Source: Octopus sinensis (Eukaryota). Taken from it: DNA of 64,000 nucleotides. Both the position numbers and the translations under genes were made by a program. The stretch's first letter is position 1. The number at the start of each line of letters is the position of its first letter. The notes below the pieces were generated by a model. That model saw nothing but the letters and a program-made list of their open reading frames with translations, made no database searches and was not told where the DNA came from. Positions 857 to 57,988 of the stretch are shown here, in pieces. Location of the stretch: contig NC_043010.1 in the NCBI RefSeq assembly GCF_006345805.1, forward strand, positions 64,418,001 to 64,482,000, in the 5' to 3' direction.

Positions 857-991
857 CATGTGCACCCGGGACTTATGGTTATGATTGTACAGGAGTTTGC
901 AACTGTCGTGATAATGCTACTTGTTACATAATGAATGGTAACTGTTCAAATGGATGCGAAATCACCTACACAGGAGCTGATTGTCAGACTC
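857..991 (+). CDS. Exon: EGF/laminin-EGF-like (MEGF10/SCARF-type) repeat of a receptor PTP-like gene
   Basis: tttcag acceptor, gtaag donor, phase 1-1; translates xCAPGTYGYDCTGVCNCRDNATCYIMNGNCSNGCEITYTGADCQT (8 Cys). Confidence 0.9.
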
Positions 992-3989: not shown

Positions 3990-5690
3990 ACGATCTAAAG
4001 CTGTTTGCTAGAAATGACGAAGAGCTAGTAGGGCTGTTAACAACTGTTAAAGAGTTCAGAAATGACATTCAGATGGATTTTAGCCTTGATAAGCAACTTT
4101 TGTAAGAGGCAAGCTCAAACAAACAGCCTTCACTACATTAGATACCGATACTACCATCAAGGAGCTTTACCCTACAAGGAAGCTATAAATACCTGAGAAT
4201 AAACGAACGAGATGGTATAGAACATGCTATTATGAAGGAAAAAATAAGAAAGGAGTATTACAGGAGAGTAAGGCTCATACTAAAAACTGAACTCAACTCC
4301 AAACATCGCATCAAAGCCATTAACACCCTGGCACTTTCAGTAGTCCAATACAGCTTTAACATCATTAACTGGAAAGTTAGAGCTCCAACGCTTGAACAGG
4401 AAGTCAAGCAGACTACTAACATCTAAGAACATGCACTACCCAAAAGCAGACGTTGATCGTCTGAACCAACCTAGAAGTAATGGTGTAAGAGGAGTGATGC
4501 AGGTAGAACTACTATAAGACCTCCACAACAGCAATGAACAGGTATGTATCTAGTACACAGGACTGGATGCTGCAGCTTGTGTGCAAACACGAAAGCAGAA
4601 AAAAATCACATTCTATTGTCAAGGAAGCCTGCAAATTCGCAAGGGAACTCGGTATTAACCCTGGATTAGATGAAGAACCTGAAACCATTGTCACAAAACA
4701 AGTGAAACGGGTAAAAAAAGAACTGGCAGAAATTGAAGAGCGGTGGAGCCAGAATAATAATAATAATAATGGGCAGTATATACTTCGAAGTCGAAACATT
4801 ATTATTATCATCATTATTATTATTTACTTTTAATAATGTTGATGTAGATTAAGCAACGACCCATCAGTGGCTGAGAAGTGCAGGACTGAAACCAGAGACT
4901 GAAGGTTTCATATTAGCGGCACAAGACCAAAGCTTACTTACTAAAGACTACAAGCCTAATGTCCTTCAAAACGGTTCTGACCCTAAATGCAGATTCTGCG
5001 GTGCATTTGACGAAACTATTGACCATCTTGTTACGGGATGTTCTGTGCTGACAACAAACGAATACAAAAATTGCTACGATAGGATAGGGCAGTATTTATA
5101 TTGGAAAATATGTAAACACTACAAAATCAACACCCTTGCTTACTGTTATGAATATCATGCTGATCCAATTCTTGAAGGTAAAAATGTCACTATCCTCCGG
5201 GATTTTCCAGTCAACACTGACAGAACGATCAAGGCAAATCGACTTTGATAATTATTAAAGACAGGAAAGAAAATACTTGTAGACTTATAGGTGTCAGTGT
5301 TCCCACTGATAAAAATATATCTGTCAAGGAATTTCACAAACTAAGTAAATATAAGGACCTGGAAATTGAAATACAAAAGACGTGTTATTGTAGGTGCCCT
5401 AGCTATGATAAGAAAGGGATGTCAGAAACATCTAGATAATATCCCAGGAGAACCATGTCTCAGAGAAATCCAAAAGATTGTACTGACAAGTACTGCCCAC
5501 ATCCTTAGAAAAACATTATTAATTTAAATGTGTGTGCTGTATTACATGAATATATTTCGCTACTGCCCCTGCCACTTTCCCTCCCCAAGCTTTCAGTTAT
5601 ATTGTAACATCTATCCTTCACTCGCCCCTAGACGCTAGGTGTGTCTCGTCAAGTGATTGTAACAAACAAGTAGATTAAAAGTAAATAATA
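3990..5690 (+). mobile_element. R4/Dong-clade (RLE) non-LTR retrotransposon, 5'-truncated, degenerate
   Basis: MKEKIRKEYYRRVRLILKTELN, QWLRSAGLKPETEGF, CRFC zinc knuckle, DFPVNTDRTIKANR..KYKDLEIE; (AAT/GAT)n tail. Confidence 0.88.
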
Positions 5691-5922: not shown

Positions 5923-5998
5923 CAACGTATATATTCGAACTTATTGGAACCGGAATACTAGTGTGTCTAGTTTTAATAGCTGTGTGTGTCTACTGCTG
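5923..5998 (+). CDS. Exon: transmembrane helix
   Basis: tttttacag / gtaagt, phase 1-2; TYIFELIGTGILVCLVLIAVCVYC. Confidence 0.85.
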
Positions 5999-6311
5999 GT
6001 AAGTGGTCGATTTATTTTAAGTTTATGAATCTCTCATATAAATATCTTATATAAGCTGAATGAATCTTTCATATTAGCCGAATGAACTGCCCCTTGATAT
6101 TTTTGATGTGATAATCAAATATATCGAAGTGCAGTTCGATTTCGTGAAGTTAAGAATTTCCATTTGCAAACTTGTAGTTCTGGGTTCGACCTTAAGTTAT
6201 TTTGCTTGCGTTGTAGATTTTTACACACTCTGGTGTTCACTTATTCACATTTCTGCATGAACTTATATAAGCTTCCCGCTGCTGCTGATCAGCGACAAGC
6301 ATTGGCAATCT

Positions 6312-7295
6312 GCCTGACCGGTCTTGAAACATGGACCTAGGAGTCCCAGTCAACTGTGAGTCGTTGCAGCCTTTGACTTCGTGAACTCTGGCGGCACAGG
6401 GGAAGCTAGAATGCGATACGTAATCGTACTTGTGTTGCTCCTCCTGGGAACGGTGTGTTGCACAACGTTTCTAAGTATCGTTTCCTGGTCTAGTCCGCGA
6501 GTTCACGTCTACCCCCAAGGGCCGCACATTCCCGCTCTAACTCAAGTGTAGCAGGTTGCTGGGGAGCCGAAAGATAGCGATCCACGCTCGGTCAGGACGA
6601 AGCTAGAGGAAACTCTGGTGTAAGTTCGAAGTGCCTCTGACGTGCAAATCAATCGTTGTAATATGATGTAGGAATGAAAACATGAATCGAGCTGAAGTTT
6701 CCCTCAGCACAGCTGGCGAAATCACGAGAACGATTTGTAACTCTGTCCGGTAAAGCTGGCGGACCCAGTGATGTTGAGGGCCTCAATCCTCTCTCGAACG
6801 GACGAAAAGGTCCGCTTCTCTTGCGTGGAGGTGGCCGTAAATTATTGCAGCCATTGTAATGCGTCACGAACGCATGGTGGTAAGTGGGCTACTTTTAGTA
6901 AGCAGAACTGGTGATGTGGGATGAACCGAACGTCCGGCTAAGGTGTCTTACACCTCGCACTCTAGATCCCCGAAAGGATGTCGGTCGAGATAGACGGCAG
7001 GATGATGGCCATGGTTGTCAGAATCCGCTCAGGAGTGTGTAACAATTTCCTGCCGAATCGACTGGCTTCGAAAATATATGGCTCGAGCAAGCAACCGATA
7101 TCGGACCTGCTGGGCGACAGGTTGCGCGATCACCGGTGAGGCGACTTTCTGATGCTCGGTCTAGTAGGACGGTGCTATGAGCACGATCCTGGATGAAACC
7201 GATCGCAGGTGCAGATCTCGGTGGTAGTAGCAATTATTTGAACGAAACTTTCGAAGACCGAAGTAGAGAAGAGTTCCGTACCAACGGGTCGCATC
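6312..7295 (+). pseudogene. Degenerate 28S (LSU) rRNA fragment
   Basis: Mutated versions of conserved LSU motifs in order: gaccggtcttgaaacatggacc, gaggaaactctggtg, ctgacgtgcaaatc, gtaagcagaactgg..gatgaaccgaacg, aggagtgtgtaacaa, ggtgcagatctcggtggtagtagcaa; no 18S/5.8S or 3' LSU sequence nearby. Confidence 0.88.
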
Positions 7296-8439
7296 CGTGC
7301 GTATATTTTATATATACACATATCTTCTCATGCCCACCACCATCAATATGTATAATTTTGTTTGTTTTATTCTGTGTCAATACTTTTCGTACTTACTAAG
7401 TAAGATTGGTGTCCAAATATTTCCCCTGAATGCTGGATAGATTAAATTTCATAAATATTTTTCCCAATTACCCTAAGTCCAACAACAAGGAACTTGGAAT
7501 GCACGTGCACACACGCATGCATACACAGACGCACACACACACACACACACACAACACAACACATGCAAAAACATATCAGTGCATACACACATATGCACAC
7601 TCTCATAAACTAAGGATTCACGAACGCTTGTATTTATAAAGACAAAGTACAGAATATTTAAGGCTGCGTTTGCATAATCTATTAGAAGCTGAAACTTCTT
7701 CAATCGTTACAATGATTTTACAATTGCCAATTCTTTAAAGGAATGAAGAATAGACACTTTGTAACAATATATATTCGAAAATATTCGTGAAATCAAAATT
7801 GAATTGTCACTGAAAAAAGGTTAGAAAATGTGTCAGATATTCATTTATTCAATTATATGCAGAACATCATATATTCAAACGCAATATTTTCCTCAGGTAT
7901 TTAGTAATTCCTCTGTGAATATCAATAGAAAATTTTGCAAAAAGTCACCGATTTCAAATGACACCTATTAGAGCTATTATTGTACAGAATATGCCCATTG
8001 TCATGCATAGACGTATAACACCATGTTATAAACCAGTTGCAATTTTGAAAAATTGGAATTGTTGAATTTTGCAGACATATCTATCGATATTTATTGAAGA
8101 ATTTTCCAAATACCAACTGGGAAACATTACATTATTTCTTCCGTGATGGATTTCTCATAACCTGAAATGTGGCCATATATTGAAACACTAAAACTACTTT
8201 AACAATAGCTACAATGCTTGCTTCTGTGTGTTTTATACATATGATTCTCATGACATGAAAGTGTCATGTATTTGTATATGTCCACAGATGAATATCTAAT
8301 GCTTCGCGTATTTTAATCAAATAGATAAATGTGTGGCACATTTTCTTACCTTTTTAGTTACCTTCTCGATAACTAGACATATTTCGATATGAATATTTTG
8401 CTAATGCATTTTTGCATTATTTCTTGATAAATTTCAATA

Positions 8440-9575
8440 ATTGGCAACATGAAACTCAAAATAACATTTCAAAAAGTTCCAGCTTCCAATAAAAATAATA
8501 TGACTATTGAACTCAACAACAGGCTCTGATATGTTTCCAGAAATTCAGTTAAACACAAGTTAAGAAGCTCTTCCCAGGGATTCCTTTCATGTGGCAAGAT
8601 TCCCCAAGTGTTAAAATAGAATATAATCTACACAATCCATAAAGGAGGAAGCAGAGCAGATGCCTGTCTTTCTGATCTCATAGAATGCATTGTCAGAGGG
8701 GAGCTGATCACATGCCTAGAAGAAAATCGTTTGCTTACTCACACAAAGCACAGCTCCCGTCCGAGAAAGAACTGTTCCACACAACTACTATAACTTTATG
8801 ACTGAATTTATTTAAGCAAGGATGTCACATATGACTTTGCAAATGACTTCAATAAAGCAGATCCCGGGATGGGGAGCTATTGTAATCACGGAGTCACAGT
8901 GGTGATCTGGGAATCCCCCTGAGTAATGAGACATCGTTCCATGAGAATATTTCTAAGACGATGACGATGTGCAGGTTACTTTAGTTGAATTCTAAGATAA
9001 TTTAAAACGAGTAGAAGGGAAATCATGTTGGCCTTATTCTCAGTCGTTTGGACTAGTCTACCGCTCCCTACTGTAGATGCCAATTGCACCAAACTAACAG
9101 CAGAGCTTGAGGCAATCCAACAGTGTTACACCACGAGGATTGTCTCAGTGAAACAGATGAGCTACTGGAAGAAGCTAAAAGAACAGCTCATACTCCCTAG
9201 AGAGAAGATGTGAAGGATATATACGAAAAATCCTGGAGGGTCTATCGCCTAAATATAGGACTGAAAGAGATAACAACCCCCAAACTGGACGCCACTACAT
9301 GGTAGCAAAGGGCTGATTATTTCAGTCTAGAGTAAGAAAAAAGTACTGTAATAGATGAGTCCAGAGTTTTACAACACCTTGACAAAACACCCCAGGTATC
9401 TACAAAACATAGAGCTGAATGTGTTCAAAAATTTGTTTTCGGATGAACACAAGAAAGGCATATAAAGACAGTGTTGTCCAACTCATTCACTTGAACAAAA
9501 CACGGAGGGAGGGTTTAGTAAATAAAATGGCATTACCCCAACATGGTCACAGCCCATGGTGGAAACAAGTAAAAA
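8440..9575 (+). mobile_element. Heavily deleted CR1-like LINE relic
   Basis: RT-like remnants (IYTIHKGGSRADA; LEAIQQCYTTRIVSVKQMSYWKKLK) and 3' end ccccaacatggtcacagcc. Confidence 0.55.
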
Positions 9576-10023
9576 GGGAAAAGTTATACACACATATACA
9601 TATTATATGTATATGTATATATATATATTAATTTGCATGGAGAATATGTTAAACTCACAAAGGGATGTTTTGTTGCATCTAAGGAAAGACTGGTTCTATA
9701 CGTAGTATTTTTGGGAAATGAAATTTCCTTAAATAAATAGGTATGTATTAAGCATATAATTCATGTTCATTAACTGAAGGAAAGAAAATGGAAAATTAAA
9801 AGTTAATGTTTATTTATTATTAAAAAAATTGGTAATCTTTACTTCCAACAGCCGTTTCCATTAGTGCCCAATAGGTAAATTAAAAACTTATGCTTTAAAT
9901 TTGCATTTGTTATGAGCATAATTCCATCAGAGAAAACAATATACATTAAGATATTACATGCTGACCTATCCATTAATGCAAGCAAACTAAATATTAGGAG
10001 TTATTATTATTATTATTATTATC

Positions 10024-11534
10024 ATTCAGTAGTTTTATTTTTATAACGTGCTTTCACTTCACTTCCGAGCGCAGCTCTGTGTGCCTTGGGTATGTGCTGT
10101 GATTTGTTGTGATGCTCTAATGGTTACTGTATGGAAAGTGTTCTGTGTAGGATGTGTGCAGTGCCTAGTAGTGCAATTTTCTGTATGTTATATGTGTTTG
10201 TAAGTCTTGGTGTTTTTGTCATGTATTTGTCTGAATATTTTTTTATCATGCCCAATGCACCCACTATGATAGGAATTGCTTCTGTTTTTAGATTCCACAT
10301 TCTAGTCACCTCCATTTCCAGGTCTTTGTATTTTGAAAGTTTCTCTATTTCTTTTAGAGACACGTTGTCATCTGCTGGAATTGATACAACAATTAGAAAG
10401 CATTTTTTTTCTTCATGATCTCTGACAACTATATCTGGTCTGTTGGCTTTAATTTCTCTGTCTGTGTGTATTGGCATATCCCAGAGTATGGTTGCTTTCT
10501 CGTTTTCTGTGACCTTTTCTGGTGTGTGCCTATACCATCTTTTTTCTGTTATTCCATAATGTTGGTATAGCTTCCAGTGTTTGTAGGTCCCAACTCTGTC
10601 GTGTCTGTGAATATATCCCTTCTTAGCCAGGACTAGGCAGCCAGAGATAATATGATTTATTGTTTCTTGTCCATCTCCACATATTCTGCAGTTACTTGTT
10701 ATATTTCTTTTCATTACATGTTTTTGGTAATTTCTGGTGGGGAGGCTTTGGTCTTGTGCTGCAATTAAAAATCTCTCTGTCTCTGCTTTGAGTCCTGAGC
10801 TTCTCAACCACTGCTGGGATATTTCTTTGTCTATTTCTTTTGCATTTAGTTTAGTCCAGTACTTTCCATGAAGGGGCTTTTCTTGCCATCGTTTTATCTT
10901 GGTTCGTTGCTGTTCTAGTTTTAGTTTTGATTTCATTTGCTTTATAGCTTTTGTTGTGTTTTTCTTCTTCTTCTTCTTCTTATTTGTTAGGTGGTATGAT
11001 TTCTTGTTTGTATTTGTCAGCTTCCTTAAATACTGAGAACAATTTTTTGTTTTGCTCGTGTTTTGCCGCTATTTGTATCAGTTTTACTTGCTTCTGAAGT
11101 AGGTATTTTTGCCGTCAAATGGTGGTTATTTTATAGTAGTTTTCCAGCTTTATAAGGCCTCTAACACCTTCTATACGTTGTATATATAGCCTTTCTATGT
11201 CAGATTTTGGGTGATGCATCCTAGATCCTGTCATTATTTTTCTTGTTTTCCTATCTATTTTGGTTAGTTCATTTATCGTCCAGTAAAGGATATTGTAGCT
11301 ATAGCTTATAACTGGGACGGCTAAAGTGTTAATACCTATTATCTTGTTTTTAGCATTGAGCTCTGTTTTTAGTATTGATCTAACTCGTCTATAGTATTCT
11401 TTCTTTATTTTCTCTTTCATTTGTGTGTGTTGTGTCTTACCCAGTTCATGGATTCCTAAATATTTGTAAGTTTGGTTTTGGTCTAATTCTCTTATTTCAT
11501 TGACTTTATCTAGTGTTATGTTGCTACTCTTAAC

Positions 11535-11535
<1 letters not shown>
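10024..11535 (-). mobile_element. R4/Dong-clade retrotransposon, 5'-truncated, inserted in (TAA)n
   Basis: ORF 10124-10936 with CRIC..ETINHIISGC knuckle and RLE motif RPDIVV..KE.EKLSKYKDLE; TAA repeats at both ends. Confidence 0.93.
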
Positions 11536-11565
<30 letters not shown>

Positions 11566-11763
11566 GGATTAATTAGAATATAATGAGTGGTAAAGTAAAG
11601 AATAAGATGGAATACAAAAGAAAAAGTAAATAAAGTAAAAAATGGAAATATAATAAAATGAAGATAATTTAAAATAAATAAAATATGTGTAAAGTAAGTA
11701 AATAAAAGGAAGGACAAGAATATCCATTTATGAGATATATAAAAGAATATGTAAATACATATA

Positions 11764-12999
11764 CAGGGTGCATAAGATATTTGAGGACAGATTTATGTTT
11801 ATAAAAAAGCAGATATATAATAACGGATAATAACTTTATTTATCAAAAAATGCTTTGAGGATAAAAATAAACCTTCTTTTCTATAATGTTATTCAATAAA
11901 GCTACCTTCAGCTTCAACTACTGTTTCTATATGAGATCTAAATCATTTACATGCTCAAATCAAGTGGTCCTGGTTCATTTTGGACAATACTCTGACTATA
12001 GTAGCATTCAAAGAATCTTTGGTGTTGTGGGCGTGTTCATTGACTTCTGTCTCAACAAAGCTCCGCATGTAATAGTCCAATGGATTGAGATCTGGGGAAT
12101 TAGGAGGCCAAATGTTAGGCGTTATGTGATCATGAAAATTTTCAGCTATTCATTCCTGTGTTACTAGAGCCATGTGTGATAGTGCAGAGTCTTACTGAAA
12201 CACATATGACCTTTCATTGCATACACTGTCAATACAGGGCTTAACAATTATTTCCAGGACCTCAGTGTAAGCGGCAGAGTTAATTCTAAGGCCTTGTGGA
12301 AAGAAGTAATGAGGCATCAAATATCCTTCATTGCGGACAACCCCTAAACCCATGACAGTTGCAAGAAATTTTGTATGCATAGCACTTGGAACTTCAGAAG
12401 GGTCTGCACATAACCATCTGTCATTTCTTCTGTTAACGTTTTGATCTTGTTCAAAGTTTTTCTCGATTGAGAAAAACAAAATCAAATCTAGTTTAAGAGC
12501 CTTTTAGATCTGATATAGGTGATTTTCTTTTGCTTTTTCTGACAAATTGATGTTCTCTCATCATATTAAACTTATATCCGATGTTTCCGTGGACAACATT
12601 TCTGACTCTTCATTCTGACACATGGAGATCTTTTGCAATTGACCTCATGGACATTCTGGGACTGTAATCAATAGTGTGTTGAACTTGCTTTAGGATGCCT
12701 TTAGAATGCTTTTAGAGTGCCTTTCATGCTTTGACACTGGTGATACATTTCCATCTTCAGTCTCTAGCTTCTTACAAACTTTGTAGACGAAAGATCTGGC
12801 AACTTTTAAAAATCGAGATATTTCTAAATCGTAATGCCCAGCCTTTATAACCACAATAACAGCCTGCCTCTTCATTTGTTGAGTAATCTGAGGGTCTGCT
12901 ATTATTATTTTCTGAAACAAAGATTATACAGAGTTAGCAAAAAAAAAAATACAGCAATGACCCCAAAAAGGTATGACCTCAAATACCATATGCACCCTG
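11764..12999 (-). mobile_element. Tc1/mariner superfamily (maT-like) DNA transposon, degenerate
   Basis: TIRs cagggtgcataagatatttgagg / cctcaaataccatatgcaccctg with TA at both ends; transposase remnants DQNVNRRNDRW, FFPQGLRINSAAY, WPPNSPDLNPLDY. Confidence 0.9.
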
Positions 13000-13199
13000 T
13001 ATATTCATACTCACTTACATATATAAAAAATTAACATACAAACCCAGTATTAATCAATCAGTTCCAATTGGTTGAAGAAATTTTAAAATAGTGTACATAC
13101 GCAATAGCGTCTCTAGAGAGAAATGTATCTAGTCATAACGCTTATTCAAAATATGGGAATGTGTGGAGCTATGTGGTCATAAGACTAGCAGTTATAATA

Positions 13200-13248
13200 G
13201 CACGTGTATACATACATATATAGCTATACAGATACGCACATATATAGG

Positions 13249-13280
<32 letters not shown>

Positions 13281-13480
13281 TACATATGCATACACATACA
13301 CATATATATATATACACAGATATACATACATACACACGTATATATACATACATATAGATATGCATACATATACATTCATGTATACATACATACGTACCTA
13401 TATACATATTTGTGTACATAAATGTACAGATATACACATACTTTCACATAAGTACATATATTTTGCGTATAATCATACAC
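13200..13480. repeat. Mixed (AT)n/(AC)n/(ATAC)n microsatellite
   Basis: Directly visible; source of several spurious ORFs. Confidence 0.9.
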
Positions 13481-14518
13481 TCATATGCGATTAATAGCTT
13501 GCAAATTGGTTTAATGAATATGTTAAATTATAGTTGCTGATGTAAGGTAATAAAAGCAACGATATGTTGTATTGTAAGTTGTATAGTTGATATCATTTAG
13601 TTACGTGTAAATATATGGGAAGAAGAGAATTACGTTATTGGAAATAATAGCTCCAATGGGTTCAGAAAAAAAAAACATCATATGAATGGGCACATATTAA
13701 TTTCAATTTGTTATATAGGTTAATGATTATTAATTAATATATATGGTTAATGATAATTAAATAATTTGTAAGAATATGTTAAATTATACCTATTAATTTA
13801 AGGTCATGAAGCCAACGATAATGTGTAATATAAGTGTTGTAATCAATATTATTTAGTTATGTGTAAATACACGGGAGGCAGAGAATTATAATAGCGGAAT
13901 TGATGACTCCAAAAGGTTCTGAAAATTCTTCCAATAAAAGGGCACATATTTATTTCAATTTGTTAATAATATTATATTTTTCTAATTACATTATCCTACA
14001 ATATAATTATATATTTTAAAATTAAAATTAGAGAACACATATTTCACTGCATTAATTTACAATTAGTTCTAACTTTGCAGTCACAATTTTCATTTCCATC
14101 TTTATGTGCATATTTATTAGAAGAATTAGCAGTAAGGGAGAGGGTATAAGTTATTTCCCTTCCGTCGTTATAGAATCTATGGCTTTTAGTATTATTGTAT
14201 AAATGTGGGAGGTTTTAGTTGCGATGATTTATTGTCTTGGATATTTCTGTTAGTGTAGAATTTATTTAATTTTCTGTTATTAATAGATGATATGATTGTG
14301 AACAAGTTATGGGTTAGACTAAAACTAATTCGGACAAGTTTATAATTGGTAATTTCACTATGTTTGTTATCGATGTTGAAATGCTTATAAATAGGCTAAT
14401 ATATGGATTTTATTATATTATTTTTAATTTGTATTGCATATGGAGCAATAAATCAAACCGTATTTGGTTCATCAGAATTATTTTTATAGTATAATCATTT
14501 TTAGATTTTTGAGCTTAC

Positions 14519-15007
14519 CTGATTGAAAGTGTTATCATGTACATTGATTTGTCTTTGTATAAAAGATGGGCTACAGTAAATATTCTGCTCAATACCAGAG
14601 ATCTACTTGTCAGCCAGTTGAGCATGTCCCTTGGAAGCTGACGATATGTGCATCTCTGATCATGAGCAGAAGTAGTTGGGGAGCATCATAGCCATGTGTC
14701 GAAAGGAATTCTTTGGGGTTTGAGTAATTCACCTCTGGAAACATGGGTGTTTTGTTCATTTTCCTTAAAAAAAAAAAAACTTATTCTCTTGAGCAAGATG
14801 GCGACTCGATCTGAAGAAAATTCTAACTGGGCCCCACCTGTAAGGTCATACGCTATTTATCTTGATATGAGATCACCATGTTGCGCACATATAGTTGTGA
14901 TGCATGTGCCTGGTGTACCCTTATCAGACGAGTAATCATGGTGGGTATATTAGGTTTCGTATATTTGTACTCAGTGTCACTTTGATGGCATGCCTTGTCC
15001 TCTCACT
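14519..15007 (+). mobile_element. AAT-associated SINE-like element, copy A (left-truncated)
   Basis: Matches six other copies in the window; ends ...ctctcact. Confidence 0.85.
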
Positions 15008-15573
15008 GAATGCAGTACCAGGCAGTGGCTCTCATGGCTTCTGATCTTAACTGATTGTTAAGTGTTATCATGTACATTGGATTGGAAGTGTTATCATGTA
15101 CATTGTTTTGTCTTGGTATAAAAGATGGGCTACAGCAAATATTCTGCTCAATACCACAAATTTGCTTGTCAGTTGTTTGACCTTAACCAGTTGAGCATGT
15201 CCCTTAGTGGCTGACGATATGTGCATCTCTGATCACGAGCAGAAGTAGTGGGGGAGCATTATAGTCATGTGTTGAGAGGGATTGTTTGGGGTTTAAATAA
15301 TTCACCTCTGGTTTCATTTAATATCCTTAAATAACCCTTATTGAAGGACCTTTTGAGTGGGATGGGTTACTCGACCAGAAGAAAATTCTAACTGGGCCCC
15401 ACCTGCAAGGTCATGTGCTGTTTATCTTGATATGAGATCACCATATCGCACACATATGGTTGTGATGCATGTGCCTGGTGTACCCTTATCAGACGGGTAG
15501 TCACGATGGGTATACTGGGCTTCGTATATTTTACCCCAGTGTCACTCTGATGGCATGCACTGCTCTCTCACTC
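15008..15573 (+). mobile_element. AAT-associated SINE-like element, copy B (full length)
   Basis: gcagtaccaggcagtggc ... gcactgctctctcactc followed by (AAT)n. Confidence 0.88.
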
Positions 15574-15619
<46 letters not shown>

Positions 15620-15623
<4 letters not shown>

Positions 15624-16455
15624 AAAGACGATAAACAAAAGGTTTTGCAAAAAAAAGACCAGTGTAAACATTTGATAACGAAAATAACAATATAGCAAGT
15701 AAAAACTCCCAATAGGGGGAGGTGCTTTGAAGGTTACTCGTGGAAAAACCCATAAAAGCCACGGGTGTCTGGTCAACAGAGCAAGAGTCCTTTCTCCCTT
15801 TTATACCTCTTATTACAGGTGTACTCTCAGAATTGGTCCTTCCATGCTGGCCATTTTTCCGACATTCACTCTCCTTTCAATAAATTTGCTAGAAGTCAAC
15901 ACTTCCCTCTCTACTCTCATCTTCCTTTACAAGTGGAACTTAAAAACGTTGATGAGGCCTTGGCTAAAGAGGAAAGTGTCTGAATAGCCTTTTCAAACGG
16001 GCTCACCATACTATTTCTTTCGCTACAGCCATCAGACAAATGAAAATTGCCTTCCCCGCGCGGTTAAAGGAGGCCGGTGAGGCAATCTTCACTTTGGATT
16101 CAGTAGACAGTTGGATTCGTCCTACATGCAACAGCAGCTGTTCGACATAAACCCACAGGTCAGTAATGCTCGGGCACTGACGAGTGTGTGCAGAACGGTT
16201 TCATCGCTCTAAGCTCACCTCGGGAAAGCCTGGCTGATGGCACTCCGTGCCTGTAAAGTTTATCCCAAACAAGCAGCGCCCCTCGGTAGCACTGCCAGGC
16301 GGGGGAATTCTGGAAGTTATCCATGAGCCCTGGCCTGAAAGTTCTCCGAAATAGACTGCTTAGCTGATCATCATCGACACTTAGAGTTTCCCCGAGAATG
16401 TCGTCGCACTTTTCATCCAATAAGCCTCTATAGAACGCTAGAGTGAAACTACTAG
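15620..16455 (-). mobile_element. Tx1/L1-clade LINE, 3' fragment of ORF2
   Basis: FRPGLMDNFQNSPAWQCYRGAL.VWDKLYRHG, degenerate CxxC..ET..H..C knuckle, LWVYVEQLL, AVAKEIVW. Confidence 0.7.
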
Positions 16456-16460
16456 CGATC

Positions 16461-16912
16461 GCTACAGCAAATATTCTGCTCAATACCACAGATTTGCTTG
16501 TTAGTTTGACCGTAACCAGTTGAGCATGTCCCTTAGTGACTGACGATATGTGCATCTCTGATCACGAGCAGAAGTAGTGGAGAAGCATCATAGCCACATG
16601 TTGAGTGGGATTCTTTGGGGTTTGAATAATTCTCCTCCGGAAAATGGGTGTTTTGTTCAATATCCTTAAACAACCCTTATTCAGGGATCTTTTGTGTGGG
16701 ATGGGTTACTCGACCAGAAGAAAATTCTAACTGGGCCCCACCTGTAAAGTCATGCGCTGTTTATCTTGATATGAGATCACCATGTTGCGCACATATGGCT
16801 ATGATACATGTGCTTAGTGTACCCTTATGAGACGAGTAGTCATGATGGGTATACTGGGCTTCGTATATTTTACCCCAGTGTCACTTTGATGGCATGCACT
16901 ACTCTCTCACTC
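16461..16912 (+). mobile_element. AAT-associated SINE-like element, copy C (left-truncated)
   Basis: Aligns to copy B from gctacagcaaatattc onward; (AAT)n tail 16913-16995. Confidence 0.85.
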
Positions 16913-16975
<63 letters not shown>

Positions 16976-17359
16976 AACAACAACAACAATAATTATAATC
17001 TATCTATATTTACAAGTAAATAGAAGCTTTTAAGTGTAAAATATAAATACAAATTCGTGCGTGCAAAAAGATTGATACTTCATTTTTTTTTACTCAAAAG
17101 TCAAATCCGAGGGTGATAATCACCCATGAGTTGTTCCCCAAGAGTCATCGCCTTGATGTTTTTGTTTACCGAAAATGCTTGCGAGACTTCCCGTGACTTT
17201 TCTAGCTTTAATACTAAATGGAGACGAACACCAATTTTTCTGTATGATCGGGTTGAATATTTAAGATTTTCTTAACAGGAAATCAATGGTAGCCTTAAAG
17301 CACAGATAAAGAATATATATATATAATCTTTATGTCGTATTAAGCACTCATTCTCATAG

Positions 17360-17371
17360 TTCGATATTTAC

Positions 17372-17437
<66 letters not shown>

Positions 17438-17705
17438 CATACGTACATACACACACACACACACACACACATATATATGTAAGTTCAGCAAAATTTAGAT
17501 TCAAATGAATATGGTACTTAAGTCAGATGCACCGGAATTTTGTACGGTGTTATCCATATAAATCTATGGGGTGATTACCGAAGACATTCTTGTTGCTTAT
17601 TTTGAGTATATATATATATATCGTAGTCTGGTATTTGACTTGCCACAATACGTTCAGGTATGAAGTCTGTTTCTTATTTTACAACATATTTACATTTATG
17701 GATAT

Positions 17706-17758
<53 letters not shown>

Positions 17759-17855
17759 GCATATATATATATACATACACATACATATATATATGTATGT
17801 GTATGTATAAATGCATATGTGTGTATATATATATGTAAGTGTATGTATATATATA

Positions 17856-17915
<60 letters not shown>

Positions 17916-18034
17916 CTCCATAAATGTAAATATGTTGTAAAATAATGAACAGACTTGCAAGTTGTGTCCTTGTATAGTAGCAGACAATCGATATCTTACA
18001 CACATACACACATTCTGAACATGTATAGATTTAC

Positions 18035-18082
<48 letters not shown>

Positions 18083-18130
18083 AGGCACACACACACACAC
18101 ATATATATATACCTATATATATCATGCGTG
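17360..18130. repeat. (AT)n/(AC)n microsatellite block
   Basis: Directly visible. Confidence 0.9.
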
Positions 18131-18247
18131 TACATAATAATACATGTTGCATGCACTCTTACATGTACATGTACCCCACCACACACACATATCACTGAGA
18201 ACCTGAAAGCAACGTAATATCTCGAAAAAAACTTTTTTCTTTCGTAG

Positions 18248-21200
18248 TATATCAATGGTTTCCAAGAAACGAAAGGCTGAGAAAGAAAAGAACCCCCAAA
18301 AGTTTAAAGAGAAGCCTGAAAAAAAAACCAAAGCTGAGAAGAGTAAAGAAAAACGCGAAAAAAAACCGAAACCTGAGAAGACTAAAGAGAAGCCTGAAAA
18401 AAAAGAAAAAGCGAAAATTGATAAGGCTAAACAGAAACCTGAAAAAAGAGAAAAAGAGAAAACTGATAAGGCTAAACAGAAACCTGAAAAAAAAGAAAAA
18501 GAGAAATCTGATAAGGCTAAACAGAAACCCGAAAAAAAAGAAAAAGAGAAAACTGATAAGGCTAAACAGAAACCCGAAAAAAAAGAAAAAGAGAAAACTG
18601 ATAAAGCTAAACAGAAACCCGAAAAAAAAGAAAAAGAGAAAACTGATAAGGCTAAACAGAAACCCGAAAAAAAAGAAAAAGAGAAAACTGATAAGGCTAA
18701 ACAGAAACCTGAAAAGAAAGAAAAAGAGAAAACTGATAAGGCTAAACAGAAACCTGAAAAGAAAGAAAAAGAGAAATCTGATAAGGCTAAACAGAAACCT
18801 GAAAAAATAGAAAAAGAGAAAATTGATAAGGCTAAACAGAAACCTGAAAAGAAAGAAAAAGAGAAAACTGATAAGGCTAAACAGAAACCTGAAAAGAAAG
18901 AAAAAGAGAAAACTGATAAGGCTAAACAGAAACCTGAAAAAAAAGAAAAAGAGAAAACTGATAAGGCTAAACAGAAACCTGAAAAGAAAGAAAAAGAGAA
19001 ATCTGATAAGGCTAAACAGAAACCTGAAAAAATAGAAAAACAGAAAATTGATAAGGCTAAACAGAAACCTGAAAAAATAGAAAAAGAGAAAACTGATAGG
19101 GCTAAAGAAAAGCCAAGTAAAACTAAAAAAGATGATAAAACACAGAAAACCAAAAAAGCCCCAAAACCTGAGAGTAAAGAAAAGCCAAAGGAAACAAAGA
19201 AGCCTGAGAGCAAAGAGAAACCCCAAAAAAAGCCTAAAGTTGAGGATCAACAAAAACCTGATAAAGCACGGAAACCTGAGAGTAAAGAAAAAAATGAAAA
19301 AGAACGGAAACCTGAAAGCAAAGAGAGTACAGACAAAGCACGAAAACCTGAGAGTAAAAAGGATCATGAAAAAGTACGGAAACCTGAGAGTAAAAAGAGG
19401 CCTGAAACGGCGCGGAAACCTGAAAGTAAAGTGGAACGTGAAAAAGCACGGAAACCTGTGAGTAAAGAGAGGCCTGAAACGGCGCGGAAACCTGAAAGTA
19501 AAGTGGAACGTGAAAAAGCACGGAAACCTGTGAGTAAAGAGAGGCCTGAAACGGCGCGGAAACCTGAAAGTAAAGAGGAACGTGAAAAAGTACGGAAGCC
19601 TGAGAGTAGAGAGGAACGCGAGAAAGCAGGAAAACCTGAGAGTAAAGAGAGGCCTGAAACAGCACGGAAACCTGAAAGTAAAGAGGAACGTGAAAAAGTA
19701 CGGAAGCCTGAGAGTAGAGAGGAACGCGAGAAAGCAGGAAAACCTGAGAGTAAAGGGAGGCCTGAAACAACCCAGAAACCCGAGGGTAAAGAGAGACTCG
19801 AAATGGCACGGAAACCTGAGAGTAAAGAGGAACGTGAAAAAGCCCGAAAACCCGAGAGTAAAGAGAGGCCTGAAACAGCATGGAAACCTGAGAGTAAAGA
19901 GAGACCCGAAGCGATACGAAAACCCGAGAGCAAAGAGGAACGGGAAAAAGCCCGAAAACCTGAGAGTAAAGGGAGGCCTGAAATCGCACGGGGACCCGAG
20001 ATTAAAGAGGAACGGGAAAAAGCCCGAAAACCTGAGAGTAAAGAGAGACCTGAAACGGCACGGAGACCTGAAAGTAAGGAGAGACCCGAAACGGCACGGA
20101 GACCCGAGAGTAAAGAGAGACCTGAAACCGCTTGGAAGCCTGAAAGTAAGGAGAGACCCGAAACGGCACGGAGACCCGAGACTAAAGAAAGACCTGAAAC
20201 CGCACGGAAACCCGAGAGTAAAGAGAGACCTGAAACCACACGGAAGCCTGAAAGTAAGGAGAGACCCGAAACGGCACAGAGACCCGAGAGTAAAGAAGAA
20301 CGTGAAAAAGCATGGAAAGCTGAGAGTAAAGGGAGGCCTGAAACGGCACGGAGACCCGAGGGCAAAAAGGAATGGTTAAAAGCATGGAAAGCTGAGAGTA
20401 AAGGGAGGACTGAAACGGCACGGAGACCCGAGAGTAAAGAGGAATGGTTAAAAGCATGGAAAGCTGAGAGTAAAGGGAGGCCTGAAACGGCACGGAGACC
20501 CGAGGGCAAAGAGGAACGGGAAAAAGCATGGAAAGCTGAGAGTAAAGGGAGGCCTGAAATGGCACGGATACCCGAGAGTAAAGAGGAATGGTTAAAAGCA
20601 TGGAAAGCTGAGAGTAAAGGGAGGACTGAAACGGCACGGAGACCCGAGGGCAAAGAGGAACGGGAAAAAGCATGGAAAGCTGAGAGCAAAGGGAGGCCTG
20701 AAATGGCACGGATACCCGAGAGTAAAGAAGAACGGGAAAAAGCATGGAAAGCTGAGAGTAAAGAGAGGCCTGAAACGGCATGGAGACCCGAGGGTAAAGA
20801 GGAATGGTTAAAAGCATGGAAAGCTGAGAGTAAAGGGAGGACTGAAAAGGCACGGACACCCGAGAGTAAAGAGGAATGGTTAAAAGCATGGAAAGCTGAG
20901 AGTAAAGGGAGGACTGAAAAGGCACGGAGACCTGAGGGCAAAGAGGAACGGGAAAAAGCATGGAAAGCTGAGAGTAAAGGGAGGCCTGAAATGGCACGGA
21001 TACCCGAGAGTAAAGAGGAATGGTTAAAAGCATGGAAAGCTGAGAGTAAAGGGAGGACTGAAACGGCATGGAGACCCGAGGGTAAAGAAGAACGGGAAAA
21101 AGCATGGAAAGCTGAGAGTAAAGAGAGGCCTGAAACGGCATGGAGACCCGAGGGTAAGGAGGAATGGGGAAAACCCCAGAGAGCTGATATTAAAGACTGG

Positions 21201-21870
21201 CCTGAAAAAGAACGAATACCTGAAAGCAAAGCGAGACCTTTTAGTAAAGCGATACGCGACATAAAACAGAAATATGAGAGTAAAGAGATATACAGAAAGG
21301 AAAAGATTTCTGAGGAACCACAGATAGCTGATAAAAAAGAAAAAGCTGCGAAAATACATTTTCCTGAAAAAACACCAAAAATTAGTAGAATAGAGTCACT
21401 TGAAAGCAAAAAGATATCTGAGCATTTCCAGGTACCTGGGAAAACACAAAAGACTGAGAGAACGCCAATATCTGAAAGAATACAGATTTCTGAAGATAAA
21501 CAGGTATCCGATAAAACACAAATTCATGCAAAAACACCAAAAACTGGTAAAATACACACTGATTATTATCAAGTACCTGAGAGATCGCAGAAATCAATAA
21601 CAATCCAGATTCCGGAAGATAAACAGATATTTGAGAGAATACGAACTCCTGAAAAACAACCAAAAACTTGGAAAATAAAGCTACCTGGGTTTAATAGGAT
21701 ATCTAAGTTTTTCCAGAAACGTAGGGAGGTACAGATTCCTGAATGTAAAGAGATATCTGAAGAAATGTCCGAGGAGACACCGAAAGAGGAGGCCAAGCAG
21801 GCAACTGGGGAGTTATCTAAATATTTTCATATATCTGAGTATGGGCTGATACCTAGGACAAAAATAATTG
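18248..21870 (+). CDS. Giant exon: about 1207-codon K/E/P/R-rich tandem-repeat cytoplasmic region
   Basis: ttttttctttcgtag acceptor (phase 2, matches TM exon: VYC-C-ISMVSKKRK); attg/gtaag donor (phase 1); no stop in 3623 bp; 45-, 39- and 78-bp repeat units. Confidence 0.85.
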
Positions 21871-21928
21871 GTAAGATTATCTATCTATCTATCTATCTAA
21901 CAATGTCCATCATTCTTGTCTCTCTTTC

Positions 21929-21979
<51 letters not shown>

Positions 21980-22178
21980 CCGAGTGAGAGAGAGAGAGAG
22001 AGAGGGGGGGAATAAAGAAGGGAGAGACAAGAATGAGAAAAGAAATTTAGCGAGGTGTAAAATTCACGCAAGGGATATTAAATATCCAAAAACTTTACTG
22101 GTTTATATTATCTATATCAATAACAATGTTATTCCAATAGGTAAATAAAAAATAAACATAAGTTTATTAATATATAAA

Positions 22179-24303: not shown

Positions 24304-24434
24304 GATTACCTAAGGACCATGTGAGGTTTGAAGACGAAATTACTTCTAGTTATCGGCCATTAAGTGATCCACCAATTATGAAATACATAAAACAACAATT
24401 GCAACTGTCTGAACCGTTTTTAGATGACTTTTTG
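24304..24434 (+). CDS. Exon: juxtamembrane segment preceding the PTP domain
   Basis: Phase 1-0, gtaagt donor; GLPKDHVRF...MKYIKQQLQLSEPFLDDFL joins TLPKG; acceptor is an uncommon GAG after a pyrimidine tract. Confidence 0.7.
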
Positions 24435-25482: not shown

Positions 25483-25570
25483 ACGTTACCAAAAGGCCTA
25501 ATCCACCCTACTAAAGCGGCTAGTAAGACAGTGAACACAGGAAAAAACCGCGACAAATCTATACTTCCAT
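25483..25570 (+). CDS. Exon: PTP motif 1 region
   Basis: 88 bp, phase 0-1; TLPKGLIHPTKAASKTVNTGKNRDKSILP. Confidence 0.88.
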
Positions 25571-31208: not shown

Positions 31209-31732
31209 CCCTGATGCAGTACAAGGCAGTGGCTTTCATGGCTTCTCATGTACATTGTTTTGTTTTTGTATAAAAGATGGGTTACAGATAATATTCTGCT
31301 CAATACGACAGATTTGCTTGTTAGTTGCTTGACCTTAACCAGTTGAGCATGTCCCTTAATGACTGACAATATGTGCATCCCTGATTGTGAGCAGAAGTAG
31401 TGGGGGAGTATCATAGCCATGTGTTGAGAGGAATTCTTTGATGTTTGGATAATTCACCTCTGGAAACATGGGTGTTTCGTCCAACATCCTCAAACAACCC
31501 CTTTTCAAGGACTTTTTGAGCGGGATGGGTCACTCGACCTGATGAAAATTCTAAATGGGCCCCATCTACAAGGTCATGCACTGTTAATCTTGATATGAGA
31601 TCACCATGTTGCGCACATATGGTTATGATGCATGTACCTGGTGTACCCTTATTAGACGGGTAGTCATTATGGGTATACTGGGCTTCGTATATTTTACCCC
31701 AGTGTCACTTTGATGGCATGCACTGCTCCCTC
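31209..31732 (+). mobile_element. AAT-associated SINE-like element, copy E (full length)
   Basis: (AAT)n on both sides; same 5' and 3' ends as copy B. Confidence 0.88.
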
Positions 31733-31763
<31 letters not shown>

Positions 31764-31766
<3 letters not shown>

Positions 31767-34331
31767 GAACAGCTAAAACAAAATATCTTCGCCAAAGAAC
31801 AAAAAATCCGCATGTATGAAAAATGCCAACGTTTCTTTGAACAAACGTTCAACTCCAACCCCAAAAGAGTCTACCAAGAACTTGACAAAAGCAAAACAGA
31901 GAACAATGCAGCACTAACAACAGAAGAAGTGGAATAGTGTCTGAAAGAAATGTTGTCAGTGAAGGAACAACCTCAGAAAAGAACTATCAAAACAACGAAC
32001 TCAGCACCTGAACAACTCTGAACTCCAGTAACAACTGAAAAGGACACCCAGGCACTGCAAAAACTAAGCAACGGGAAGACACCTGGGCACAATAAGACAC
32101 CCAACTTCTGGTTAAAATACCTGACTGAAATACATAAATAGCTGGCTGAGAAATTTAATGAAATACTATCAGAGCCGGCATGGCTCACAGATGGGAAAAC
32201 TATCCTAATTCCCAAATTCACTGAAACAGCAAACCCAAAAATTACAGACCGGTAACTTATCTCCATACAGTTTACAAAGCCTTTATTCCAATAACGTTGC
32301 AGAAAATGAGTAAGCATCTGGAAGAAAACAACCCATTTCCTGGAGAGCAGAAGGAATGCTGCAAGGATTCATACGGCTGTAAAGATCAGCTACCGATCAA
32401 TAAAGCCATAACTGAAGACAGTCGCCGAAAGACAAAGGGTATGGCCTGGATCGATTACCGATAGGCTTTTGATAGTATTTCTCACAGATGGATCCTACAA
32501 ACAAGCCATGAACAAGGTACCACCAATATGAAGAAGGTAACACCAATAATCATAAAATATATAAAACATTTCATGAATAAATGGCAGACAGTGCTAGAGA
32601 TCCAGACAAATGAGGGACTCATAAAACCAAATCTATCCCCATTAGAAGAGAAATATTCCAGAGAGACACTCTCTCCACTCCTTTTCTGCTTGGCACTGAC
32701 ACCTTTATCTGATATGCTAAAAAAACTGGATGTGGATACAACGGTTACGGCAAAACAATTAGCCACCTCTTATATATAGATGATCTAAAACTATACACTA
32801 CAAATGATAAACACCTGGAAACATTACTGCAGATAGCACATTGATTTACCAAAGAAATAAACATGAAATTTGGCTTAGAAAAATGTTCCAAAGCAAACGT
32901 AAAAAGAAGAATGCTAGTCAAGAGTAGCAACATCACACTGGATAAAGCAAATAAAATAAAAGAATTATGCCAAAACCAGACATACAAATACTTAGGAATC
33001 AATGAACAAGATACGATACAAATGAAAGAGAAGATAAGAAAAGAATACTATAGATGAGTTAGATTAATACTGAAAACAGAGCTCAATGTGAAAAACAAGA
33101 TAATAGGTATCAACACTCTAGCCATCCCTGTTATAGGTTACAGCTACAATATCCTTAACTGGACTCTAAACGAACTTATCAAAATATAAGGAGAACAAGA
33201 AAAACAATGACAGGATTTAGGATGCACCAACCAAAATCTGACATGAAAGTTTATATATACAATGTGTGGAAGGTGGTAGAGGCCTTATACTGCTAGAAAG
33301 CTATTACAAAATAACCACCAGGGGACTACAAAAATACCTACTTCAGAAACAAGGAAAACTAGTACAAATAGCCTCAAAAGATGAACATTACAAAAAGCTG
33401 TTTTCAGTCTTTAAGGAAGCTAACAGATACAAAAAAGAAGTCCCTGTACCTAATAACAATGAAGAAAAAGAAGAAACAGCTGAAATCCAAACTAAAACTG
33501 AATCAGCAATGGATCATGATAAAACGGTGTCAAGAAAAGCCCCTTCATGCAAATACTGGGTCAAAACTAAATGCGAAAGAAATAGACAAAGCAAAATCCC
33601 AACAATGGCTGAGAGGCTCAGCCCAAATTGAAGGATTTTTAATTGCAGCGGAAGACCAAAGCCTCCCCATAAGAAATTACCAAAAACATATAATGAAAAA
33701 AAAAAGGACACAAGTGACTGCAGAATATGTGGAGATGGATACGAAGCAATAAACCATATTGTCTCTGGCTGCCCAGTCCTGGCTAAGAAGGAATATGCCA
33801 ACACTAAGGAATAACAACAGAAAAGATGGTATAGGCACACGCCAGAAAAGGTCACAGAAAATGAGAAAGCAGCCATACTATGGGATATGCCAATATACAC
33901 AGATAGAGAAATTAAGGCCAATAGGCCGGATATAGTTATTAGAAATCATCAAGAAAAATGCTTTCTAATCGATGTATCAATACCAACATATGATAACGTT
34001 TCTCTAAAAGAAATGAAGAAACTTTCAAAATACAAAGACCTGGAAATAGAGGTAACTCGAATATGGAGTCTAAAAATGCAAACAATTCCTCTCATAGTAA
34101 GCGCATTAGGTATTACAATAATATTCAGGCAAATACATAACAAAACTACCATAACTAACAAGTATATATAACATACAAAAAATAGCATTACTAGGCACCT
34201 CACACATCCTACGTAAAACAATTTCAATACAGTAAAAATAAGAGCATCACAATAAACCATAGCACAACCCAAGGCACACAGAGCTGTGCTCGGTAGTGCA
34301 GTGAAAGCACGTGATAAAACAAGACTACTGA
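31764..34331 (+). mobile_element. R4/Dong-clade retrotransposon, 5'-truncated, multiply frameshifted
   Basis: RT remnants (LSPLLFCLAL, YIDDLKLY, MKFGLEKC), RLE (ANRPDIVIR..KYKDLEIE); same 3' UTR as 10024-10120; AAT/GAT tail. Confidence 0.92.
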
Positions 34332-42001: not shown

Positions 42002-42075
42002 ATGATCATTCTCGCATAATTCTGCATCCAGATGAGATATCATATTCAGATTACATTAATGCATCCTATTTAAAC
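42002..42075 (+). CDS. Exon: PTP motifs 2-3
   Basis: tttcag / gtaagt, phase 1-0; YDHSRIILHPDEISYSDYINASYLN. Confidence 0.95.
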
Positions 42076-44242: not shown

Positions 44243-44267
44243 AATCGGAAGTACATAATAACTCAAG
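44243..44267 (+). CDS. Microexon: PTP motif 4
   Basis: ctctgttacag / gtaagt, 25 bp, phase 0-1; NRKYIITQ(G). Confidence 0.88.
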
Positions 44268-55615: not shown

Positions 55616-55664
55616 GTCAGTATAACTGAGCAGTAATATTATCGGTTTACAGAAAGTAGTCAGT

Positions 55665-57947: not shown

Positions 57948-57988
<41 letters not shown>

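Follow-up and report, generated by a model that had tools for sequence, protein, structure and literature searches.

The 64,000-nt stretch of Octopus sinensis DNA analysed here (contig NC_043010.1, positions 64,418,001 to 64,482,000; hereafter the window, with positions counted from its first letter) carries on its forward strand part of a gene resembling protein tyrosine phosphatases of the receptor type (RPTPs). One of its exons, composed of charged tandem repeats followed by a tail, is very probably a genuine coding exon of this gene. On the sequence evidence, the gene is the orthologue of Octopus bimaculoides XP_014769029.1, and the repeat exon is placed between the single transmembrane (TM) helix and the tandem D1-D2 phosphatase module. 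An initial annotation, made from the sequence alone, had described a coding exon with the same boundaries and overlooked its main feature, namely that it makes up the juxtamembrane region, on the cytoplasmic side, of a (pseudo)phosphatase of receptor type. The exons identified in the window and the parts of the repeat exon are listed in Table 1.

Table 1. Exons of the receptor-type phosphatase-like gene and subdivisions of its repeat exon (PTP, protein tyrosine phosphatase; L001, the orthologous O. bimaculoides locus).
Feature	Position	Strand	Description
EGF-like cysteine-rich extracellular exon	857-991	+	CAPGTYGYDCTGVCNCRDNATCYIMNGNCSNGCEITYTGADCQT; one spare base at the end; 91% nucleotide identity to L001 2842-3359
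Transmembrane exon	5923-5998	+	P-TYIFELIGTGILVCLVLIAVCVYC-C; begins with two spare bases and ends with two (TG)
Charged-repeat exon	18248-21870	+	single exon of 3,623 nt; 1,207 aa of repeats and tail; whole cytoplasmic juxtamembrane region
Lead segment	18248-18389	+	47 aa; stop-transfer-like basic (C)ISMVSKKRKAEKEK, degenerate KPEK units; net charge per residue +0.26
Array A	18390-19109	+	16 x 45 nt (15 aa), KPEKKEKEKTDKAKQ; 45% Lys, net charge +46
Array B	19164-20279	+	approximately 31 x 36 nt (12 aa); transitional units, then KPESKERPETAR and KPESKEEREKAR alternating (72-nt higher-order period)
Array C	20280-21143	+	12 x 72 nt (24 aa), RPE[SG]KEE(REK/WLK)AW-KAESKGR[PT]ETAR; Trp-bearing
Tail	21165-21870	+	235 aa, degenerate, non-tandem; 80% identity with O. 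bimaculoides XP_014769029.1; last base G spare
Exon after the repeat exon	24304-24434	+	(G)LPKDHVRFEDE...PPIMKYIKQQLQLSEPFLDDFL; precedes phosphatase domain D1; two spare bases (GA) first
PTP D1 exon	25483-25569	+	KNRD loop (canonical KNRY); boundaries approximate
PTP D1 exon	42004-42075	+	DHSRIILHPDEISYSDYINASYLN; boundaries approximate
Small PTP D1 exon	44246-44266	+	RKYIITQ; boundaries approximate
PTP D1 exon	46610-46687	+	ETIVDFWRMIWQQECTTIIMF...; boundaries approximate
PTP D1 exon	49715-49837	+	IKNIQYWPNV...; boundaries approximate
PTP D1 exon	55458-55613	+	WPERGVP (WPE, not WPD); boundaries approximate; omega 0.1

The repeat exon is well delimited, because a polypyrimidine tract and AG form an acceptor whose last base is 18247 (ttttctttcgtag/T), while at the other end 21871 is the first base of a GTAAG donor that fits the consensus (ATTG/gtaagatt). 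On the + strand, the open frame extends over 18207-22145 and closes 42 nt upstream of the exon. As previously noted, the coding frame of the exon contains no stop; 224 and 18 stops were counted in the other two + frames, and 29, 11 and 7 in those of the - strand. Tandem Repeats Finder reported a 45-nt unit present 16.6 times (18361-19106, 94% matches) and a 72-nt period present 26.5 times (19266-21173, 84% matches), both with 0 indels, that is, none among approximately 80 repeat units. Arrays A and B are separated by a linker of 18 aa, and the unit consensus sequences were confined to this exon within the window (chance expectation, 0 matches). The 45-, 36- and 72-nt periods are all multiples of three, in agreement with the initial annotation, and the degenerate tail that it described is present. 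Its 15-aa unit also stands, with an extent corrected from 15-16 copies at 18415-19100 to 16 units at 18390-19109, whereas the units given as 13 aa and, for the EEWLKAWKAES composite, 26 aa actually measure 12 aa (36 nt) and 24 aa (72 nt).

The repeat exon joins its neighbours in phase. The single base left at the end of the EGF-like exon is completed by the two that open the TM exon; the closing TG of the TM exon and the initial T of the repeat exon make a Cys codon (junction ...VYCC-ISMVSKKRK); and the final G of the repeat exon (21870) with the GA at 24304-24305 encodes a Gly followed by LPKDHVRFEDE, the same junction being found in the orthologue protein. All three junctions (3/3; chance expectation, 1/27) are therefore in phase, and the spliced product reads ...GADCQT-P-TYIFELIGTGILVCLVLIAVCVYC-C-ISMVSKKRKAEKEK...LIPRTKII-G-LPKDHVRFEDE.... 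The best 19-residue Kyte-Doolittle mean of the TM exon is 2.74, and a basic KKRK stretch lies directly after the helix, like in typical type I membrane proteins. The EGF-like exon gave a weak match to Pfam EGF_laminin (E=0.028), under the cut-off. The repeat exon has a length of 3n+2, and direct joining of the TM exon to the exon at 24304 (TG+GATTACCTAA) reads W-I-T-stop; exon skipping would thus produce a tail-less receptor, not an in-frame isoform. Two adjacent Cys residues at the cytoplasmic end of the TM segment (5990-5998 / 18248, the second spanning the junction) are candidate palmitoylation sites.

Downstream exons were located by local tblastn with a generic PTP catalytic-domain probe (PTP1B), which yielded + strand matches in catalytic-domain order at 42004-42081 (DHSRI..DYINAS), 46568-46690 (FWRMIWQQ), 49715-49831 (QYWP) and 55422-55559 (WPERGVP). 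The gene thus displays the architecture of a receptor-type PTP, with a single-pass TM segment preceded by an extracellular region and followed by PF00102 domains, the exons of D1 from KNR to WPE lying at 25.5-55.6 kb and D2 lying outside the window.

With the tail as query, HMMER run exhaustively against 1.84 billion representative proteins returned exactly one match (E=5e-103, 80% identity), the 821-aa O. bimaculoides protein XP_014769029.1 (A0A0L8HVJ5), named "receptor-type tyrosine-protein phosphatase T-like". This protein begins inside the last repeat unit (MARRPKSKEEWGK...), continues through the tail, uses the donor of the repeat exon and proceeds with FPKDRVRFEDE... and two Y_phosphatase domains (Pfam E=2.3e-87, two stretches); the closest solved structures are the D1-D2 modules of PTPRS and LAR (E ~1e-80). 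The orthologous locus (L001; GCA_001194135.2, CM046614.1:5,291,933-5,344,108) is collinear with the window across introns and exons, with 87-93% nucleotide identity, and the donor sequence of the repeat exon is conserved between the two species. In place of the repeat array, L001 contains a run of 2,422 N (7403-9824), flanked on one side by the counterpart of window 18086-18191 and on the other by array C-type units and then the tail. The XP_014769029.1 model is therefore truncated because the repeat array is an assembly gap in GCA_001194135.2. Further N runs occupy L001 1-453, 5661-5741 and 11249-12016. Upstream in L001 lies a gene model of 691 aa with F5_F8_type_C (discoidin) domains, whose span ends at L001 5165. 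Since this span contains the orthologue of the TM exon (L001 4539-4613, with a one-codon indel), the model most likely represents the N-terminal half of this very gene. A single receptor gene would then probably have been divided by the gap into two models, one with the discoidin, EGF and TM parts and the other being the "PTPRT-like" XP_014769029.1. The TM and repeat exons are separated by an intron (5999-18247) of 12.2 kb here and approximately 2.8 kb in O. bimaculoides (L001 4618-~7460); window positions 7044-16998 are without an O. bimaculoides counterpart, so that transposons have inserted in a lineage-specific manner.

The protein encoded by the whole exon gave no match in a 5.8-billion-protein index or in Pfam, with composition bias as the probable cause, and a 70-aa concatenation of two PTP exon peptides retrieved no candidates in the protein search. 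A word-indexed search with the tail and the next two exons missed XP_014769029.1 despite its presence in the collection and the long identical stretches that it has in common with the query, and negatives from that search do not mean absence for this locus. An exact look-up of the read-through ORF 18255-22145 matched no record. The literature searched contained nothing relevant on the gene, its accessions or octopus RPTPs.

Several residues characteristic of active phosphatases are replaced. The exons in the window encode KNRDK instead of the canonical KNRY and WPERGVP instead of the WPD loop, so that the Tyr of the former and the Asp of the latter are missing. The orthologue lacks the signature (I/V)HCxxGxxR(S/T) with its nucleophilic Cys: its D1 sequence is VVQSSNGVGRSG, compared with VVHCSAGVGRTG in PTPRS, HCSAG having become QSSNG (Cys to Ser), and its D2 reads VHGSDGMKKSG (Cys to Gly, Arg to Lys); the replaced residues of the orthologue lie at L001 30288-30467 and 40344-41116. 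Both phosphatase domains of XP_014769029.1 are thus without the catalytic cysteine. As the signature exon lies beyond the window, the Cys-to-Ser change in O. sinensis is inferred from the orthologue. Judged by these residues, the host protein is a receptor (double) pseudophosphatase. A receptor pseudophosphatase that acts as a scaffold has been described in PTPRU (PMC7320164).

The comparison between species also revealed how the exon evolves. Coding sequence differs by four indels, three of them in the tail (21, 23 and 24 aa) and one, of a single aa, in the TM exon; all consist of whole codons, and no frameshifting indel was detected in the tail, an event that the initial annotation had named as one that would refute it. 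By contrast, in the locus-wide alignment, which is mostly intron, mismatches amount to 7.7% and indels to 7.8 per kb, and only 25% of the latter have a length divisible by three. At these rates, the ~1.56 kb of coding sequence that could be aligned should contain approximately nine indels that shift the frame (a hand estimate) and 0 were seen, whereas the probability of four indels out of four being multiples of three is 0.25^4 = 0.004.

Amino acid sequence is less strictly kept. The ratio of non-synonymous to synonymous substitution rates (dN/dS, or omega), which in all cases rests on small counts, is 0.74 for the tail (10 synonymous and 29 non-synonymous changes), 0.42 for the last repeats, 0.52 for the other cytoplasmic exons together and 0.10 for the WPE-loop exon. 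The EGF-like exon, with 12 non-synonymous and 2 synonymous changes (omega ~1.7, all 8 Cys kept), may be under diversifying selection, although these counts are small. The picture suggested by these alignments is that of a fast-evolving gene with weak amino acid constraint outside a few core elements. Among the units of array B, 25 of 59 variants are synonymous versus 28% expected (p=0.015); arrays A and C gave no significant departure. In array C, every visible unit distinguishes the two species at a pair of columns (GAG/GAA and GCT-Ala/GAT-Asp), and the T/M unit variant is common to both species, a pattern which, to judge from the visible units, shows that this array undergoes concerted evolution. 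The REK-to-WLK variant of array C (20352-21071) involves three base changes (CGGGAA to TGGTTA), with one possible intermediate being a stop (TAA); 6 of the 12 units in the window have this variant, and none of those visible in O. bimaculoides does. Because the sequence is weakly constrained, the frame strictly so, and turnover proceeds by whole units, the data fit selection on length, charge and frame, which would keep the reading frame and composition rather than the exact sequence.

The product of the repeat exon is dominated by K (25%), E (21%), R (9%) and P (9%), with a charged fraction of 0.57 and a net charge of +132. Net charge per residue declines from +0.26 in the lead to +0.19 in array A, +0.10 in array B and +0.06 in array C and the tail, and the first 305 residues carry a net +64. 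The product contains 109 Pro residues, which in the arrays are spaced every 6-15 residues. The AlphaFold2 model, computed without an alignment, is essentially all coil (mean predicted local distance difference test score, pLDDT, of 36; no residue at or above 70), with short helices only (4-9 residues), those of 8-9 residues falling on the EEWLKAWKA units of array C. The repeat region is thus probably intrinsically disordered according to the model, and the earlier proposals of a disordered polyampholyte and of regular Pro residues preventing long helices are both supported, given the 57% of charged residues, the longest Pro-free run of 27 aa and the lack of long helices in the prediction. A predicted radius of gyration of ~10 nm and a contour length of ~430 nm were obtained with a standard scaling law for intrinsically disordered proteins. 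Single alpha-helix (SAH) domains are Pro/Gly-free, E/R/K-rich segments of more than ~30-40 aa that form one continuous helix; an ER/K helix of this kind was ruled out by the Pro/Gly spacing (longest Pro/Gly-free run, 26 aa, in the tail) and by the AlphaFold2 model. The EEWLKAWKA units were also considered as an amphipathic membrane-binding helix and discarded for their low hydrophobic moment (0.27). The suggestion of tuning through CK2 phosphorylation fared worse: 16 S-x-x-[E/D] sites were counted versus 16.4 +/- 3.3 in composition-preserving shuffles, and, as these sites are not enriched, the phospho-tunable idea is left without specific support. The whole exon product contains 3 T-x-x-[ED] and 6 [ST]P sites.

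Taken together, we consider a membrane-proximal, basic, disordered tether/spacer exon of a receptor pseudophosphatase to be the best overall explanation of the locus, with reasonable confidence; the tether/spacer mechanism taken by itself is tentative. The spacer or tether role had been proposed initially and is a reasonable one given the position, with the TM helix on one side and phosphatase domains on the other. A K-P-E-x-K-E motif, expanded in frame several times over, would have given rise to three arrays of 15-, 12- and 24-aa units beside an older, degenerate tail, and the exon would still be changing as whole units are gained, lost and homogenised. As an intrinsically disordered, strongly charged tether, it would supply the whole link from the membrane to D1-D2. 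Its Lys-rich, basic, membrane-proximal third may be drawn to the acidic inner leaflet or to the cortical cytoskeleton, and the remaining near-neutral polyampholyte would be a long flexible spacer setting the reach of the dead phosphatase scaffold from the membrane and the packing density of the receptor. In this respect, lysine-rich tandem repeats have been found to suffice for cell-periphery targeting in a length-dependent manner (PMC5207086). A further extension, which we regard as a long shot, would make the exon an evolvable intracellular "ruler", a polyampholyte of variable length anchored in the membrane, in which the number of units, reset in each octopus lineage by concerted evolution, tunes the reach, surface density or condensate tendency of the dead-phosphatase scaffold; the Lys-rich array A would zip onto the inner leaflet, which is acidic, and weak multivalent contacts would come from array C with its Trp and Arg. 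We know of no description of receptor tuning by juxtamembrane length for any RPTP.

A number of observations weigh against this explanation or parts of it. The exon is 73% purine and 11% T, and such arrays stay open in some frame rather easily; moreover, a GC-rich 63-nt x 5.2 minisatellite at 59768-60090 (95% matches) has open reading frames (ORFs) of 176-192 aa on both strands. Repeats with 3n periods can therefore yield long ORFs without coding, and a long ORF alone is weak coding evidence. Counting shared variants once, the chance that no stop arose is 0.47 in array A, 0.19 in array B and 0.43 in array C (a single "stop" flagged in array C being an artefact of a two-change codon scored base by base), and the combined value of ~0.04, the product of the three, is a modest signal. 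In addition, XP_014769029.1 is a computational model that covers only the last unit and the tail of the exon, and the acceptor and first 2.7 kb face the assembly gap in the other species. An ATG lies 8 nt inside the exon (18255), where a transcript could start, and expression of the exact repeat-containing isoform is inferred from the sequence. Since AlphaFold2 was run without an alignment, its low pLDDT is suggestive of disorder and not proof of it. The weak amino acid constraint leaves room for a gene that may be gradually losing its function, and the roles as a tether or spacer and in binding lipid or cortex are proposals that start from position and composition. For these reasons, the coding assignment made initially, which the open frame, in-phase splicing, the orthologue and whole-codon indels all back, is based here on splice phase, orthologue and indel pattern rather than on ORF length.

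Among other explanations, the one that survives best, unlikely as we find it, holds that the arrays act by specific binding and not by passive spacing. The acidic partner of array A would be, for example, tubulin tails, the cortical cytoskeleton or a calsequestrin-like protein, and the Trp/Arg stickers of array C would cluster or condense the receptor. KEKE motifs, a compositional class and not a homology family, were reportedly defined by Realini and colleagues in 1994 as stretches of at least 12 residues with more than 60% K plus E/D, no W, Y, F or P and no five like charges running. These criteria single out 18 segments, namely all 16 units of array A (a 14-residue stretch) together with a single segment each in the lead and the linker, and none in arrays B and C or the tail. 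Array A also contains KKE[EIVK] 12 times, and in this sense the likeness to the microtubule-binding repeats of MAP1B proposed initially holds for its KKEK/KEKE-type composition and not for homology, which was found neither in the protein index nor in Pfam. Docking and clustering are likewise in line with the gain of W and L in array C through a multi-base change that spread to half of its units, exactly where AlphaFold2 places helices, and with the arrival of Lys-rich repeats at the cell periphery in another system (PMC5207086). Nevertheless, the searches detected neither MAP1B nor triadin nor any Pfam family as a homologue, the hydrophobic moment of the W units is low and the sequence constraint among units is weak, all of which argue against specific contacts.

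It is improbable that the gene is decaying after loss of catalysis and that the exon is a tolerated runaway expansion without a function of its own. Decay would agree with the disappearance of three active-site residues (catalytic Cys, Asp of WPD and Tyr of the pTyr loop), with omega values of ~0.5 in the cytoplasmic exons, 0.74 in the tail and 1.7 in the EGF exon, and with an exon nucleotide divergence of ~6%, near the 7.7% of the mostly intronic locus. It is at odds, however, with a frame that neither species has broken in more than 13 exons, with the indel pattern (4/4 whole codons versus 25% locus-wide, and an estimated nine or so frameshifts expected under neutrality), with the omega of 0.1 in the WPE exon and with conserved splice sites; besides, pseudophosphatases such as PTPRU are functional scaffolds (PMC7320164).

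Very improbable is that the repeat exon also, or instead, serves as a first exon, with transcription beginning just upstream and translation from the ATG at 18255, so that the pseudophosphatase would be soluble, would not be a receptor and would have a charged region at its N terminus. This ATG is the first codon-aligned Met, 8 nt past the acceptor, the frame closes 42 nt upstream, and the public orthologue model likewise starts at an internal Met; that start, however, is a gap artefact, a strong polypyrimidine-AG acceptor sits directly at 18247, and the phase fits the TM exon, creating a classic TM plus KKRK stop-transfer junction. Hardly credible, finally, is a non-coding intronic purine-rich minisatellite whose open frame would be a by-product of T-poor composition and 3n periods, wrongly taken into the gene prediction, since the base composition, the other 3n minisatellite with long ORFs on both strands and the modest no-stop statistic that speak for it are outweighed by the opening of only one of six frames across three unrelated arrays and 700 nt of non-repeat tail, by the in-phase junctions with coding neighbours on both sides, by tail indels that are all whole codons in a segment belonging to an annotated orthologous protein, and by the W-I-T-stop that results when the exon is left out.

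Both the gene family, RPTP-like pseudophosphatases, and the sequence class, charged low-complexity linkers, are already known, and the tether/spacer exon does not represent a new class of molecule. What is unusual is the combination, in a single exon, of a 1,207-aa juxtamembrane region with three young repeat arrays; a giant juxtamembrane repeat region was not found in the literature searched and is missing from GCA_001194135.2 owing to the gap. The window corrects the annotation by revealing the content of the gap and how the two halves of the receptor gene join. The resulting pseudophosphatase has a juxtamembrane region roughly ten times longer than those of well-studied RPTPs, made of young, homogenising charged repeats, and offers a natural case in which to ask if what selection sees in a disordered tether is how long and how charged it is, and not the sequence. 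For cephalopod genomics, it also serves as a warning that short-read assemblies can lose long purine-rich coding repeats.

The window as a whole has a GC content of ~36% and contains microsatellites and fragments of retrotransposons without long terminal repeats (non-LTR). An element of ~320 bp resembling a short interspersed nuclear element is present in five copies (14705-15011, 15273-15582, 16602-16921, 31425-31741 and 57641-57956), 80-87% identical to L001 571-888 and often located beside (AAT)n or poly-N/I-coding triplet runs. The non-LTR fragments (4142-5524(+), 10124-11717(-), 32225-34168(+), 55660-57135(+), 60680-63086(+) and 38273-38764(-)) encode a reverse transcriptase and a C-terminal KPLHGKY...QWLRSSGLKAETEGF...AAQDQSL module, and the copy at 61575-63086 retains an intact ORF of 503 aa.

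Compared with known systems, the octopus protein resembles classical receptor PTPs (LAR-type, PTPRS, PTPRF, PTPRA) in its type I topology, with one TM helix and a tandem pair of PF00102 domains. The juxtamembrane region of human RPTPs measures roughly 80-150 residues, whereas that of the octopus protein comprises 1,207 residues of tandem charged repeats encoded by one exon. Its ectodomain also differs, with EGF-like and discoidin domains (the latter known from the orthologue) and not Ig, FN3 or MAM domains, and it is without the catalytic Cys (in the orthologue), the WPD Asp and the KNRY Tyr. PTPRU and IA-2 retain the catalytic cysteine and have a juxtamembrane region of ordinary length. In the octopus orthologue, by contrast, D1 shows Cys to Ser and D2 shows Cys to Gly, and the protein encoded in the window has a giant repeat spacer. 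It shares with PTPRU (PMC7320164) and PTPRN/IA-2 the nature of a receptor-type PTP-fold scaffold devoid of phosphatase activity. Triadin (KEKE) and the KKEE/KKEI repeats of MAP1B offer a likeness of another kind, alternating Lys/Glu low-complexity repeats that in triadin lie beside a membrane anchor and in MAP1B serve as a basic binding module. However, no sequence homology to either was found, the charged domain of triadin is luminal and encoded by many small exons, and arrays B and C contain Pro, Arg or Trp and are not KEKE. The exported Lys-rich repeats of Plasmodium (GARP and the KAHRP family; PMC5207086) are similarly short, born by expansion and variable in length, with peripheral targeting that depends on repeat number; these are soluble exported proteins of an unrelated organism, whereas the octopus protein is already anchored in the membrane. 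By analogy only, the exon also recalls titin PEVK and the side-arms of neurofilament M/H, long disordered Pro/Glu/Lys-rich repeats in which length is the functional variable; PEVK units of ~28 aa, however, each occupy their own exon, and neurofilament side-arms are built of KSP phospho-repeats, while the octopus exon carries only six [ST]P sites.

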